Of a stretch of DNA of 64,000 nt, positions 12,215-16,605 are shown in pieces. The DNA is taken from the sequence record NC_010811.2; one strand, 5' to 3'. A model generated the notes under the pieces. The model worked only from the letters and a program-made list of their open reading frames with translations. It had not been told where the DNA came from and ran no database searches. The stretch's first letter is position 1, and each line of letters opens with the position of its first letter. Position numbers and translations under genes: made by a program.

Positions 12215-12694
12215 GTGGATCACTTCCAGAAAGAGCTACAGCAGATCCGCGACGGTATCGACGAGCGCATCCGCGAATTCGGCCACACGTTCGTAGGCGT
12301 CTTTCCCACGGCGGAGGACCCCACCCCGGTCACGCCCTTCATGTACACGGTGGGACTCACCGCGAAGGGCTGGCCCGAGATCATCGCCACCGGCAATCTG
12401 TCGGTGCGTGCGATGCAGTGGTGTCTTGGGGCAGTTGTCAGCACCATGGAGAAGGAGGGCGCTGACTTCCGTACCGGCATCCGCCACGATCTGTTCAACT
12501 TCAAGTGCGAGCTGCGCTGGGTCACAAGCGAAGAGCTGCGCATGGAATACGCGGTGCACGCTACCCGCTTGTATGGCGACAACGTGCGAGTGCTGCAACT
12601 GGTCTGGACCGACGATCAGAACCGATTACCGGACGAACCGGGCTATGACGCTCAGCGCTTCATTCAGCAGGTGTTCCCTGCCACTGACCAATGA
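12215..12694 (+). CDS. DUF4262-like protein
   Basis: GHTFVGVF...PFMYTVGLTAKGWPEIIATG...VLQLVWTDDQNRLP pattern. Confidence 0.75.
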   Translation: MDHFQKELQQIRDGIDERIREFGHTFVGVFPTAEDPTPVTPFMYTVGLTAKGWPEIIATGNLSVRAMQWCLGAVVSTMEKEGADFRTGIRHDLFNFKCELRWVTSEELRMEYAVHATRLYGDNVRVLQLVWTDDQNRLPDEPGYDAQRFIQQVFPATDQ

Positions 12695-12876
12695 CCCCCG
12701 AACACGCAACTGACACCCTCGTGCGCATGGCCCGAGGTAGCAAGGCAACCATGGGCATCATGGTGATGCTCTACACTCTCGGCAAGGATCAATGGCGACG
12801 AGAGAAGCGAGCTGCTCGGCTCACAGCCAATCGCCGTAAGAAGCAGCGTCGCGCACGCACAGGACGTCGATCATGA
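12691..12876 (+). CDS. Small basic hypothetical protein
   Basis: ATGA overlaps on both sides. Confidence 0.5.
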   Translation: MTPEHATDTLVRMARGSKATMGIMVMLYTLGKDQWRREKRAARLTANRRKKQRRARTGRRS

Positions 12877-13103
12877 ACGCGCTCCAATACGTCACCGACA
12901 TGAGCGCCGTGTGCGGCGGCTTCTTCTCTATGGAGAAGCCCTGCACCAAGGCCAGTGGATCGGAGATCCGTCGCTGGATCCAACAGTCGTCTATCGTTGT
13001 GAACGGGCAAGTGGTGCGCGACCCGAAGGCTGTTATCGCACTGCCTGTCACCAGTTTCGTGCTGTTTCCCAAGTCACCCAAGAAGCGCATCACCATTCTA
13101 TGA
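12873..13103 (+). CDS. Stand-alone S4-like RNA-binding domain (TyrRS C-terminal-like)
   Basis: SGSEIRRWIQQSSIVVNGQVVRDP matches the S4 SxSEARRLIxQGxVxVNG pattern. Confidence 0.7.
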   Translation: MNALQYVTDMSAVCGGFFSMEKPCTKASGSEIRRWIQQSSIVVNGQVVRDPKAVIALPVTSFVLFPKSPKKRITIL

Positions 13104-13236
13104 TGGATCTCGACGACCTGACCTTTGTTCCTGGCTTTGTGCTGGGCATTGTTATCGGACTAGCCGCTGGTCTCCTGCTTTGCGGCTACCACGCAATCAC
13201 TACCTTCTAACCCAAAGACACCCAACGAGGTTACTC

Positions 13237-14217
13237 ATGGACGGCATCATTCGCAAACTCACCCGTGGCGCATACGACATCCAGCAACTGCGCATCGCAA
13301 CCGGACTGCGCGTCGTTGCACAATTCCGCGATCGGTTCAACGTGCCGGAACCCGTGACCGACGTGCAACTGGATCATGCAACGACGGGCGAAGCGCGTGC
13401 GGCACTCGACGCCGAGGCCAAGGAAAAGGCGGACAAGCAACGCGACGCCCTGCTCAAGCAGATCCGCATTCACTTCGACCGCGTGACCGATGGCATCGTT
13501 GCCACCCAACGCCGCAAGACCTATCACTTCGACGACGTGTTCAAGGACGAGACCGACGTGTGGTTCATGGAGAACTACATGGGGATTCTGGACCAGGAAC
13601 AGCAGGCGTTCAAGCGTCTGGAGCGCGCACTTGGCAAGAACGGCTTCTACAATGACTGGCTGGCGAACGTCAAGGGCATCGGCCCGGCGATGGCTGGCGT
13701 TCTCATCTCGGAACTCGATCCGTACCGCGCCAAGTACCCGTCCAGCTTCTGGAAGTACTCGGGGCTGGATGTGGTGACGGTCGTCGATCCCGAAACGCAT
13801 GACATCGTCCGCACCGAGGGGCGCCGCAACTTCAAGCATCACCTCGTGGAGTCCACATACACGGACCGCGATGGCAAGGAACAGACGAAGATGGGGCTGT
13901 CGTACAACCCATGGCTCAAGACCAAGCTGCTCGCGGTGATGGCACCCTCCTTCCTCAAGTGCTCGCACCCGGTCTACAGCAAGATGTACTACGACTACAA
14001 GCTCCGCCAGTTGAATCGGCCCGAGCTCAAGGACAACAAGGCGGTGAAGGCCATCGCCCACAAGCGCGCACTGCGCTACGTGGCCAAGATGTTCCTGCGC
14101 GATCTGCATACGGCATGGCGCACGTATGAGGGGCTGGAAGTCTATCCGTCGTACGAGGAAGCGAAGCTGGGCATGACCCACGGTCGCGATCCTTCGGCTG
14201 AAGCCGCACGTCAGTAA
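13237..14217 (+). CDS. tasA: IS110/Nop-domain RNA-binding protein, TasA-like (no RuvC or HNH domain seen)
   Basis: 326 aa; N-terminal helical region (LRIATGLR), WLANVKGIGPAMAGVLISEL HhH-like motif, SSFWKYSGLDV, YNPWLKTKL, YYDYK, AHKRALRYVAKMFLRDL; no DEDD domain and no PxxxxSG catalytic-Ser loop; directly upstream of a dual-repeat array. Confidence 0.8.
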   Translation: MDGIIRKLTRGAYDIQQLRIATGLRVVAQFRDRFNVPEPVTDVQLDHATTGEARAALDAEAKEKADKQRDALLKQIRIHFDRVTDGIVATQRRKTYHFDDVFKDETDVWFMENYMGILDQEQQAFKRLERALGKNGFYNDWLANVKGIGPAMAGVLISELDPYRAKYPSSFWKYSGLDVVTVVDPETHDIVRTEGRRNFKHHLVESTYTDRDGKEQTKMGLSYNPWLKTKLLAVMAPSFLKCSHPVYSKMYYDYKLRQLNRPELKDNKAVKAIAHKRALRYVAKMFLRDLHTAWRTYEGLEVYPSYEEAKLGMTHGRDPSAEAARQ

Positions 14218-14225
14218 AGCAAGAA

Positions 14226-14245
14226 CAGGGACCTTCGGGTCCCTG
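14226..14245 (+). terminator. cUUCGg hairpin between tas gene and array (terminator or processing/stabilising stem)
   Basis: CAGGGACC-TTCG-GGTCCCTG, perfect 8-bp stem, no U-tract after it. Confidence 0.6.
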
Positions 14246-14257
14246 CCAAACAGGAGA

Positions 14258-15578
14258 AGTCATCCTACGATAAATAGCGCACCAGAAGCGCAAAGACTCC
14301 CCTATAGCGGTGGTGTACCCTGTGAACTAAGACAACCATTGCTAGGTAGTGAGTCAATATCATACAGTCATCCTATAGATGAGAGCGCATCATTGTGCTA
14401 AAGACACCCATACTCAGTGAGTGATCGAGCCACAGAAGTCCTCCTTGGCAGGAGAGTGATCCTATGGAACAAAGAAACCCGAGATCATAGAGTGTGCCTC
14501 TTGAAATGTAGTCACCCTATAAAAGCGAGCGACCTCAGAGATAAAGTCACCCCAATAGTTGTAGTGTGCCCGCAGTAGCAAGTCACCCAAGTCCGATCCT
14601 AGCGACTCTTCTACGAAAGCAACCCATCGCAGCTTAGTGTTCCTTCCAATGGCAGTCATCCAGTATCATAGAGTGCACCCGTCCGCCGTGAGCCCGCCGT
14701 AATAGCGCAGTGCATACCTAAAAAGCTAAGTCACCCTGAGAGATGCTAGTGAGCCACGAACCGGAGACACCCGATATAGTACAGCGCTCCACGAATATGG
14801 AGGCATCCAACCAAGAGTAGTGACCCAAACGCAAGATTCATCCCAGAGACACAAGTGCTCCATGTGCGCGAAAGTAACCCCAAAGAAGGGAGAGCACCTG
14901 ACTGACCTAGTCACCCCTTAGTACACAGTGTTCCTTTGTAGTCAAGTCCTCCAGAAACAAGGAGTGAGTCCGTAAACTGCTAGACATCCATTAACGCAAA
15001 GTGTGTCATCATGGGGGGAGTCAGCCACAGAGCAGTAGCGAGCCTACAAAACTAAGACACCCAGAAAAGTGAAGCGCGCCGCATCAGGCTAGTCACCCTT
15101 AGAATTGAAGTGCACCTAGGATACGAAGACGCCCCATATCAGCTAGTGCGCCACCCGAATGAAGGCATCCTCCCTTGTTTAGCGGCCCTATGACGTAAGG
15201 CACCCTCATCATGCCAGCGGCCTTGTAAGATGAGACACCCGTTTCACATGAGTGAACCGACCGGTATAAGGCAACCTCGGTATGCCAGTGACCCGAGAAC
15301 CAAAGACAACCGATCCCCTCTAGTGCGTCCACCCGAAATAGAACACCCGAGCCACGAGCGCTCCGTTCAAGATTAGTCACCCGTTATTGCCAAGAGCACC
15401 AGAACAATCCAGCCTCCCGTTACACAGGAGTGAGCCCTCATGTCAGAGTCAGCCATAAAGGCATAGTGACCCGCGTTCTCAAGTCCCCCAATCTACATGA
15501 GTGACCCTTAGTTCCAAGACCTCCTTAACTCTTGAGTGTGCCTGTTGCAGTGAGCAATCCCATTGTATGCAGCGTGCC
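14258..15578 (+). ncRNA. TIGR-like dual-repeat guide-RNA array, 37 units of about 36 nt
   Basis: Repeat A (AGTCACCC/AGACACCC/AGTCATCC type) starts at 14258, 14294, 14330, 14366, 14402 ... 15553; repeat B (AGTGAGCC/AGCGCACC/AGTGTGCC type) at 14276, 14312, 14348 ... 15571; mean A-to-A period 1295/36 = 36.0 nt; spacers 9-12 nt (mostly 10), apparently unique; no credible ORF. Confidence 0.88.
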
Positions 15579-15642: not shown

Positions 15643-16605
15643 ATGACTGTTGAATACCTCATCCCTCGTTCCCTTACGTACGTGGAACGCGACTGCCAAC
15701 CGCTGGGACTGGCACGTGCGCTCAAAGCGCTGTCTCATGAATTCGATCCGCCAACAGCGCGTATCGCCGACGAGAATGCGAGTCGGCTTGCCGCAGAGCT
15801 TGGCTTCTTTGAGATGAAGGAGCCTACGCCGTCTGCGCGACTCGACTGCATCCGTTTGATGCGCGAGCGCGTGGCTGTCTATCTCAAGAAGCGCTTCGAG
15901 CATCTGATGCCTGAGCCCATGTGCGCCACTTACGACTGGGCAGCGGACATGGAACTCGTACTGATGCGGTCTTACAAGCCTGAGATTGGCCGCTGCACAC
16001 CCATGGCGCGCACGGTCAACATGAGCGTGTTGGAAGTGGAAGAGAAGGAAGCCTTGGCGGCGCCTCGTCCTCCGCTTGTGTCGGGCATCAACTCCACGTT
16101 TCAGCCTCTGACGAAGAAGGCATATACACGCTCGCAGTACGCACACGGCGACTGTCGTGTAGCCGAGGTGTTGAATGACGTGCGTGCCTGCATTCCGATC
16201 CCTGACATTCAGTTCTTCATCGTCGTGCGCACAGTGCAGACTGCCGACGTTCTTGCCTGGGCGTGCACCCAGTTCATGCCAGATGAGTTGGTACTCACTC
16301 TTACGGGCACGACCAGCTCCGACGAGCGGCAGCGTTCCATCGAGGCATTCAACAATGGGCACTGCAAAGTGCTGATCGCCACGTTCCACATGCTTCAGGG
16401 CTTTCGCTTTGCAAAGCGGCCAGCGATAGCGGTAAGCTCCACGGCTCCCTGCTACGAAGAAGACGCAAATCAGATCCTCGGCCGGCTGAACGCAGATACG
16501 CCGGTGGTCCACACCAACTTGGCAGTGTGGCGCATCCACACCAACTTGGCAGTGTGGCGCATCCAGGACCACGAAGACCGCCAACACTGTGCACAGGAGG
16601 ACTGA
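15643..16605 (+). CDS. Protein with an isolated SF2 helicase C-terminal (RecA2-like) domain
   Basis: LTGTTSSDERQRSIEAFNNGHCKVLIATFHMLQGF...QILGRLN; no Walker A/DEAD half seen. Confidence 0.65.
   Translation: MTVEYLIPRSLTYVERDCQPLGLARALKALSHEFDPPTARIADENASRLAAELGFFEMKEPTPSARLDCIRLMRERVAVYLKKRFEHLMPEPMCATYDWAADMELVLMRSYKPEIGRCTPMARTVNMSVLEVEEKEALAAPRPPLVSGINSTFQPLTKKAYTRSQYAHGDCRVAEVLNDVRACIPIPDIQFFIVVRTVQTADVLAWACTQFMPDELVLTLTGTTSSDERQRSIEAFNNGHCKVLIATFHMLQGFRFAKRPAIAVSSTAPCYEEDANQILGRLNADTPVVHTNLAVWRIHTNLAVWRIQDHEDRQHCAQED
16508..16565 (+). repeat. Perfect 27-nt tandem duplication (HTNLAVWRI x2)
   Basis: TCCACACCAACTTGGCAGTGTGGCGCA at 16508 and 16535, then TCCA. Confidence 0.9.

Follow-up and report, generated by a model that had tools for sequence, protein, structure and literature searches.

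The window, meaning the whole stretch of DNA that was analysed, comprises the first 64 kb of the genome of the Ralstonia phage phiRSL1 (AB366653.2 / NC_010811.2), a jumbo myovirus of 231,255 bp; it agrees with that record at every base and has the same coordinates. On the + strand it contains a tasA gene at 13237..14217, followed by a dual-repeat TIGR array at 14246..15578 that consists of 37 units of about 36 nt with 74 alternating repeats. A G+C-rich hairpin with a 4-nt loop is located between the tasA stop codon and the array (14224..14247, +).

The tasA gene, RSL1_ORF034, is an intact open reading frame of 326 amino acids, running from an ATG at 13237 to the stop codon at 14215-14217. RefSeq names it 'transposase' and GenBank 'hypothetical protein', and its annotated start is a TTG at 13180. 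A GAGG sequence lies 8-11 nt 5' of the ATG at 13237, and in the alignment of relatives several N-termini coincide with the residue encoded there; thus, this ATG, which was also the start used in the original prediction, is preferred to the annotated one. Both amino acid strings quoted in that prediction are present in the ORF034 translation.

The gene is situated among small early-region-like genes, all of which are on the + strand. ORF030 (12215-12694, +) encodes a DUF4262 protein (74.9 bits; PHROG 17488, function unknown). In the ORF033 region (12873-13103, +), for which the record annotates a shorter start, a 76-aa open reading frame located 134 nt upstream of tasA contains an S4 RNA-binding domain (23.2 bits against a cut-off of 22.8), and a 68%-identical copy of this frame was found in the relative L006, about 4 kb from the tasA gene of that locus. 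ORF035 (15643-16605, +), directly 3' of the array, has only a Helicase_C match, and no PADLOC, PHROG or PDB match was obtained for it; near its C-terminus there is a perfect 27-nt tandem duplication of 2.1 copies (16508-16565). The PADLOC search returned no match. Elsewhere in phiRSL1, ORF170 (103055-103984; 39055-39984 in L002) is annotated 'CRISPR/Cas system associated'.

The ORF034 protein matched the NCBIfam equivalog model NF052498 ('TIGR-Tas system RNA-guided endonuclease') with 116.1 bits against a cut-off of 100, and the match was end to end, with model positions 2-215 on residues 6-295. In PDB searches, the single sequence retrieved TasR (9mty) at E 6e-11 and TasH at E 6e-4; a profile of 45 relatives retrieved the same proteins at E 6e-22 and 5e-14, respectively, and nothing else of note. 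An AlphaFold2 model built on the relatives' alignment reached a mean pLDDT of 90.6 and a pTM of 0.83. It shows coiled-coil helices (residues 3-34, 51-84 and 105-132), a helix-hairpin-helix at about residues 140-160, a four-stranded beta insertion (residues 179-220) and Nop-type helices at the C-terminus. The best nine Foldseek matches of this model were all TasH or TasR chains (E 1e-6 to 7e-5); the IS621 and ISCro4 bridge recombinases came next, at E of about 1e-2 and 10-13% identity. The family is large, with 1805 clusters at 50% identity having E <= 0.001 and 400 having E <= 1e-30, and 37 columns are invariant across 45 relatives down to 40% identity. TasA was defined by Faure et al. as 'a solo Nop domain' (PMC12045711). 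The family model, the sequence and fold matches with TasR and TasH, and the adjoining dual-repeat array all agree with the original description of the protein as TasA-type.

The nuclease domain of TasR is absent from ORF034. In the profile alignment, TasR residue 123 is matched to the column that holds residue 13 or 14 of ORF034, which leaves the first ~110 TasR residues, the RuvC part, without a counterpart; ORF034 begins where the coiled coil of TasR begins. The Pfam search of ORF034 detected neither HNH nor RuvC, with sub-threshold Transposase_20 and HhH matches only, and the AlphaFold2 model is purely helical through residue 178, the first beta strand starting at 179. The earlier claim that the protein lacks an N-terminal DEDD/RuvC domain and an HNH motif is therefore borne out. 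The RefSeq name 'transposase' and the NCBIfam name 'endonuclease' are both unsuited to a nuclease-free TasA, and the present assignment corrects them.

Two apparent insertions had also been proposed, and the account of the second has to be amended. The charged N-terminal stretch, at about residues 36-57, is missing from compact relatives of 284 aa; it is located in the turn between helices 1 and 2, where the coiled coil has its tip. The loop that ends in the second quoted string, however, is a family-wide feature, being present in 45 of the 45 aligned relatives; only TasR and TasH lack it. Special to the phiRSL1 TasA clade and a few others is a hairpin that follows the G-L-D-V segment directly, at residues 179-195.

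The likeness to IS110 transposases is remote. Pfam Transposase_20 (PF02371) matched residues 142-180 of ORF034 with 16.6 bits against a threshold of 21.3, covering profile positions 4-43 of 87, and the NCBIfam IS110 model NF033542 aligned to residues 110-180 only, with 14.4 bits against a cut-off of 140. The IS110 likeness ends at residue 180, right after G-L-D-V, and it is at this point that the four strands at 179-220 are inserted. The DEDD (RuvC-like) N-terminal domain of IS110 was not found in ORF034, whose residues 1-178 are all helical in the model, and for the full C-terminal transposase domain, including its serine-bearing part, ORF034 remained below both family thresholds (PF02371, NF033542). 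The term 'recombinase-dead' can thus be retained as a description of descent, but not in the sense of a recently inactivated transposase, since the homology to IS110 is remote and at the level of the fold only.

The 1.4-kb interval between ORF034 and ORF035 contains no credible open reading frame, and its autocorrelation peaks at 18 nt (0.357) and 36 nt (0.350), compared with about 0.25 elsewhere. A chain search recovered 74 alternating repeats at 14257-15578, with a gap of 18 nt in 54 of the 73 intervals. This chain scored 730.7, whereas shuffled sequences reached at most 16.8, the reverse strand 7.8, and 16 further stretches of the window no more than 14.6; no second array of the same kind was found in the 231-kb phiRSL1 genome. 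Two types of repeat alternate, and in both of them A-G comes first (97-100%) and C-C last (81-100%). In the loop type, which has 9 columns, column 2 is A (100%), column 3 is G (97%), column 5 is C (86%), column 6 is A (76%) and columns 8-9 are C (100%). In the edge type, column 2 is A (97%), column 3 is G (100%), column 4 is T or C (95%), column 5 is G (100%), column 8 is C (81%) and column 9 is C (89%). The inner conserved columns are thus C and A in the loop type and a pyrimidine followed by G in the edge type.

From one 'CC' to the next 'AG' there are about 10 variable nucleotides. The inner length of the edge repeat varies, mostly between 3 and 5 nt, which accounts for gaps of 17 and 19 nt. 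About one third of the units deviate from the ideal 'CC' and 'AG' boxes or from the 10-nt spacing, so some units may be decayed. Neither Tandem Repeats Finder nor Rfam detected the array, as would be expected for repeats that are so loose, and Rfam contains no family for a tigRNA array.

The last two bases of the hairpin at 14224-14247 are the 'CC' of a truncated edge repeat before the first spacer. No T run follows the hairpin on the + strand, and the promoter and terminator scan found no sigma-70 site and no + strand terminator between tasA and the array. The hairpin may define where the precursor begins at its 5' end, or it may protect the tasA transcript.

In the edge repeat of TasR systems, an extra base pair that covaries is formed between the two ends of one tigRNA (Faure et al., PMC12045711). 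The same relation was found here: in each of six independent arrays, that of phiRSL1 and those of five relatives, column 7 of one edge-repeat copy (i) pairs with column 4 of the next copy (i+1), with a shuffle p <= 0.0015 every time. In the five related arrays 90-100% of the copies pair. In the phiRSL1 array the proportion was 63% as first parsed and about 32/37 in a recount by hand that placed the short, 7-nt edge repeats, a recount that was not checked by script. The pooled pairs of the six arrays were A-T (120), G-C (120), G-T (13) and A-C (3). Controls with same-copy and previous-copy pairing were not significant, and the loop-type repeat shows no such pairing. Covariation of the edge pair distinguishes the edge repeat from the loop repeat, shows that the array is read on the + strand, and indicates selection on the units as RNAs. 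The order within each tigRNA is a half edge, spacer A, the loop repeat, spacer B and a half edge. The anatomy, strand and register of the array are shown by these analyses.

In TasH, two residues of a C-terminal loop, Tyr289 and His296, carry out cleavage of the precursor (PMC13421893). An ungapped alignment places Tyr306 of ORF034 opposite TasH Tyr289, and both Tyr306 and His315 are invariant in 45 of the 45 aligned relatives. The invariant His315 falls two columns after the column of TasH His296, and the assignment of the dyad is therefore inexact. Processing of the precursor by the protein itself, with Tyr306/His315 as candidate dyad, is likely on the basis of this alignment; the offset of the histidine keeps it short of proven.

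The covariation also bears on the database annotation, according to which ORF034 would be a decayed transposase of the IS110 family and the downstream repeats a relic without function. The RefSeq name, the label 'transposase' of PHROG 4285 and the weak Transposase_20 match could be cited for such decay. An IS110 model score of 14 bits where 140 are needed, the missing DEDD domain, the 37 invariant columns and the 1805 family clusters argue against it, and compensatory covariation in the array reflects ongoing selection on the RNA. Decay is extremely improbable and, given the array covariation and the family-model scores, can be regarded as refuted for practical purposes.

The activity of ORF034 can be considered from what has been published on other TasA proteins. 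RNA-guided binding of double-stranded DNA without cleavage is described in the literature for MbTasA, PlTasA and FpTasA; PlTasA and FpTasA bind DNA. In a preprint of September 2026, Xu et al. (bioRxiv 10.64898/2026.09.09.750476) reported that another TasA did not cleave its target but bound it tightly, with a target-specific gel shift. In the same work, this TasA repressed both a reporter and a chromosomal gene with no partner, reversibly and depending on the guide; the repressing TasA belongs to the stem-loop class, not to the dual-repeat class. By homology with these proteins and with TasH, we infer that ORF034 would process tigRNAs, bind DNA and repress. The suggestion in the original prediction that the protein acts as a programmable roadblock or repressor by binding DNA that it does not cut is supported by the same homology, such activity having already been published for other TasA proteins. 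ORF034 is thus probably the TasA effector of a dual-repeat TIGR-Tas system of the jumbo phage phiRSL1 that silences its targets without cutting them.

The following mechanism is proposed. The tasA gene and the 1.3-kb array would be transcribed together from the + strand. A TasA dimer, joined through the N-terminal coiled coil, would bind the precursor at the 'AG' and 'CC' ends of the repeats, cut inside each edge repeat by means of Tyr306/His315, and retain one tigRNA of about 36 nt. The two spacers of 9-10 nt would then pair with opposite strands of one DNA site of 18-20 bp, and the TasA-tigRNA complex may, by homology, unwind this site and bend the DNA sharply. Having no nuclease or recombinase centre, the complex would stay bound and block transcription, and possibly replication, at the site.

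The proteins closest to ORF034 (53-73% identity) are encoded on metagenomic contigs of 223-254 kb and shorter, which most likely belong to related jumbo phages. In five of five related loci, an array of the same type is located directly after tasA, and these arrays contain 18, 40, 42, 96-97 and 66 units; the two longest are at 11255-14754 of L009 (96-97 units) and 10967-13378 of L010 (66 units). A usual TIGR array has 5-15 units (Faure et al., PMC12045711). Six units of the L010 array have a near-identical partner, which suggests that arrays can grow by duplication of units; internal duplicates were not found in the other arrays.

No gene besides tasA and the array is common to the six loci within 10 kb, and the two therefore form a self-contained module. 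This gene order gives no support to the earlier suggestion that TasA recruits a partner in trans, in which case the protein would only find the site while a nuclease, helicase or other effector encoded elsewhere destroyed or remodelled the target. A division of labour of this kind would be similar to that of Cascade and Cas3, or of type IV CRISPR and DinG; the helicase-like ORF035 stands directly after the array, and tasA operons with ParB-like genes occur at some loci (Faure et al., PMC12045711). However, in none of the five related loci does a homologue of ORF035 lie within 10 kb of tasA, no other neighbour is conserved, ORF035 itself is without a PADLOC, PHROG or PDB match, and the published TasA represses without any partner. 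Action through a partner is therefore considered unlikely, and silencing by the TasA-tigRNA complex itself is preferred.

Delimitation of the guides allows their targets to be sought. Published target cleavage leaves 8-nt 3' overhangs (PMC12045711), and overhangs of this kind can arise only if one strand of the target carries spacer A and, after it, spacer B in reverse complement; this order was therefore taken as the target geometry, and other arrangements of the spacers served as decoys. Two sentences of that paper disagree on the exact position of the cut, which does not affect the geometry. The 37 guides were compared with the whole 231-kb phiRSL1 genome in two registers, both target geometries and two spacer definitions. 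No match of 17/18 or 18/18 was found; the best was 16/18, and the counts at 15-16 equalled those of the decoys. The phiRSL1 genome is thus excluded as a target. A wider comparison of 299 guides from the six arrays with phiRSL1 and the 20-kb loci of the five relatives yielded one 16/18 match, the same as the decoys.

No spacer is common to different arrays among the six, the TasA proteins of which are 59-73% identical by tblastn, and the 37 spacer pairs of phiRSL1 resemble one another no more than shuffled pairs do. In base composition the spacers are rich in A and poor in C, and their GC content is 0.39-0.51 over the six arrays compared with 0.51-0.58 in the phages; in phiRSL1 the values are 0.42-0.45 for the spacers and 0.58 for the phage. 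A composition so uniform would be better explained by a constraint acting on the guide or on site melting than by the base content of any one source.

Because the 37 guides have no match to the phage itself, their targets are to be expected in the host or in competing mobile elements. In a scan of viral contigs with guides 3, 19, 24, 25, 26, 33 and 37, six 18/18 matches were obtained, where about 5-6 are expected by chance; they came from 4 of 14 18-mers, their flanks were unrelated, and none extended to 20/20. A scan of guide 29 against the genomes of 185,579 species, a set that does not include the host genome, gave 53 matches scattered over unrelated taxa, a chance level, with none in Ralstonia and none at 20/20.

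These results can be set against the possibility that the system regulates the genes of the phage itself, such as the timing of early and late expression, and not foreign DNA. Regulation of the viral life cycle was listed among possible roles by Xu et al. (10.64898/2026.09.09.750476), and the early-region-like position of the locus would suit this role. The phage genome nevertheless offers no site at 17/18 or better in either geometry or register, the spacers turn over completely between relatives with similar TasA proteins, and their GC content is well below that of the phage. Control of phage genes is disfavoured and appears highly unlikely; action against the host or rivals accords better with the complete turnover of spacers and the absence of self-matches.

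Several genes annotated as glucosyl-HMC transferases are present at 164-171 kb of phiRSL1 (L004 1-7500), beside a gene of the thymidylate synthase family. The DNA of phiRSL1 may be modified, and such modification could keep the guide complex off its own genome.

Guides might also have no perfect natural sites at all, with TasA serving as a DNA-bending or chromosome-coating factor that acts through partial, seed-level matches at many places. The uniform composition of the spacers, whatever the GC content of the phage, is consistent with this, as is the lack of an exact target anywhere searched. TasR cut an E. coli site with only 6/9 matches on one spacer, and the target DNA was bent by about 180 degrees (PMC12045711). 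Against this stand the near-matches in the phage genome, which are not enriched over decoys, and the strongly target-specific binding of published TasA; the upkeep of 37-97 unique guides with intact boxes also suggests that each guide matters. A coating or bending role is accordingly rated as quite unlikely, and targeted silencing remains the preferred explanation.

TasA in this clade of jumbo phages may constitute a large, fast-evolving and non-destructive arsenal, in which 37-97 unique guides are directed to many host or rival sites at once; this broader proposal is tentative. The natural targets and the role of TIGR-Tas systems, especially of nuclease-free TasA, were named as open questions in both founding papers, one reason given being that most TIGR loci are on metagenomic contigs without a known host. 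phiRSL1 is an isolated and fully sequenced phage of a sequenced host, and its 37 guides are now delimited with their strand, register and target geometry. Whether they are directed to host genes, rival elements or nothing exact becomes, for these guides, a matter of simple sequence comparison. Since phage and host are both cultured and sequenced, the natural targets of a TIGR system could here be identified for the first time in this plain way.

Silencing without cutting by TasA is already known. The new elements are the phiRSL1 member, the absence of self-matches and of shared spacers, the A-rich and C-poor spacer composition, the lack of a conserved neighbour, and the chance-level outcome of the scans with seven guides in viral contigs and one guide in 185,579 genomes. 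phiRSL1 was not found in the text or the searched supplements of Faure et al. (PMC12045711), and no link between phiRSL1 and TIGR was found in the literature.

Several known systems can be compared with that of phiRSL1. One group is that of the IS110 bridge-RNA recombinases, such as IS621 (PDB 8wt6, 8wt9). They have in common with ORF034 a remote fold of the RNA-binding C-terminal domain (Foldseek E of about 1e-2), and the helix-hairpin-helix segment of ORF034 is recognised by the Transposase_20 profile. ORF034, however, is only 10-11% identical to them and lacks the DEDD domain, and its homology to the IS110 profile stops at residue 180; the phiRSL1 locus has neither transposon ends nor a bridge RNA, and the family models are far below their cut-offs. 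The Nop5 protein of archaeal box C/D sRNPs resembles TasA in its Nop-domain fold, its coiled-coil dimer and an RNA in which box C/D-like elements enclose two guide segments. Nop5 was nevertheless absent from the ORF034 Foldseek matches at E <= 0.001, and Tas proteins, in published work, target DNA instead of RNA; genes for a fibrillarin-type methyltransferase or an L7Ae-type protein were not found in the phiRSL1 annotation examined.

Nuclease-free CRISPR effectors (type IV, type V-M and the engineered dCas9) are likewise RNA-guided roadblocks that are carried on mobile elements and multiplexed from an array. The TasA fold is unrelated to theirs, and its split guide reads both DNA strands; moreover, the TasA system is without adaptation genes, and no requirement for an adjacent motif has been reported. 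A further comparison is with TasR (9mty) and TasH (9w03, 9w04, 21kl), which are the best sequence and fold matches and contain the same helix-hairpin-helix and C-terminal helices. The extra edge-repeat base pair of TasR covaries in the phiRSL1 array too, and the processing tyrosine of TasH has its aligned counterpart in ORF034. ORF034 differs from both in having no RuvC or HNH domain, so that DNA cleavage would not be expected, and from TasR in having about 30 more residues between the G-L-D-V and N-P-W segments.

The phiRSL1 system can also be compared with the published TIGR-TasA systems (Faure et al. 2025; Xu et al. 2026), which include FpTasA of Flavonifractor plautii, a dual-repeat system, and PlTasA and MbTasA, which are of the stem-loop class. 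These proteins likewise consist of a solo Nop domain with a coiled coil and are nuclease-free, and the systems have a 36-nt period, are borne by phages and need a single gene. The phiRSL1 array is far longer than is typical (37 units, and 18-97 in relatives of the clade, compared with 5-15), and its repeats are loose, conservation being limited to 'AG', 'CC' and one or two inner columns; about 10 variable nucleotides separate the boxes instead of 9. The phiRSL1 TasA has, in addition, a longer coiled-coil tip and the extra beta hairpin at residues 179-195, and the host of this system is a cultured bacterium.
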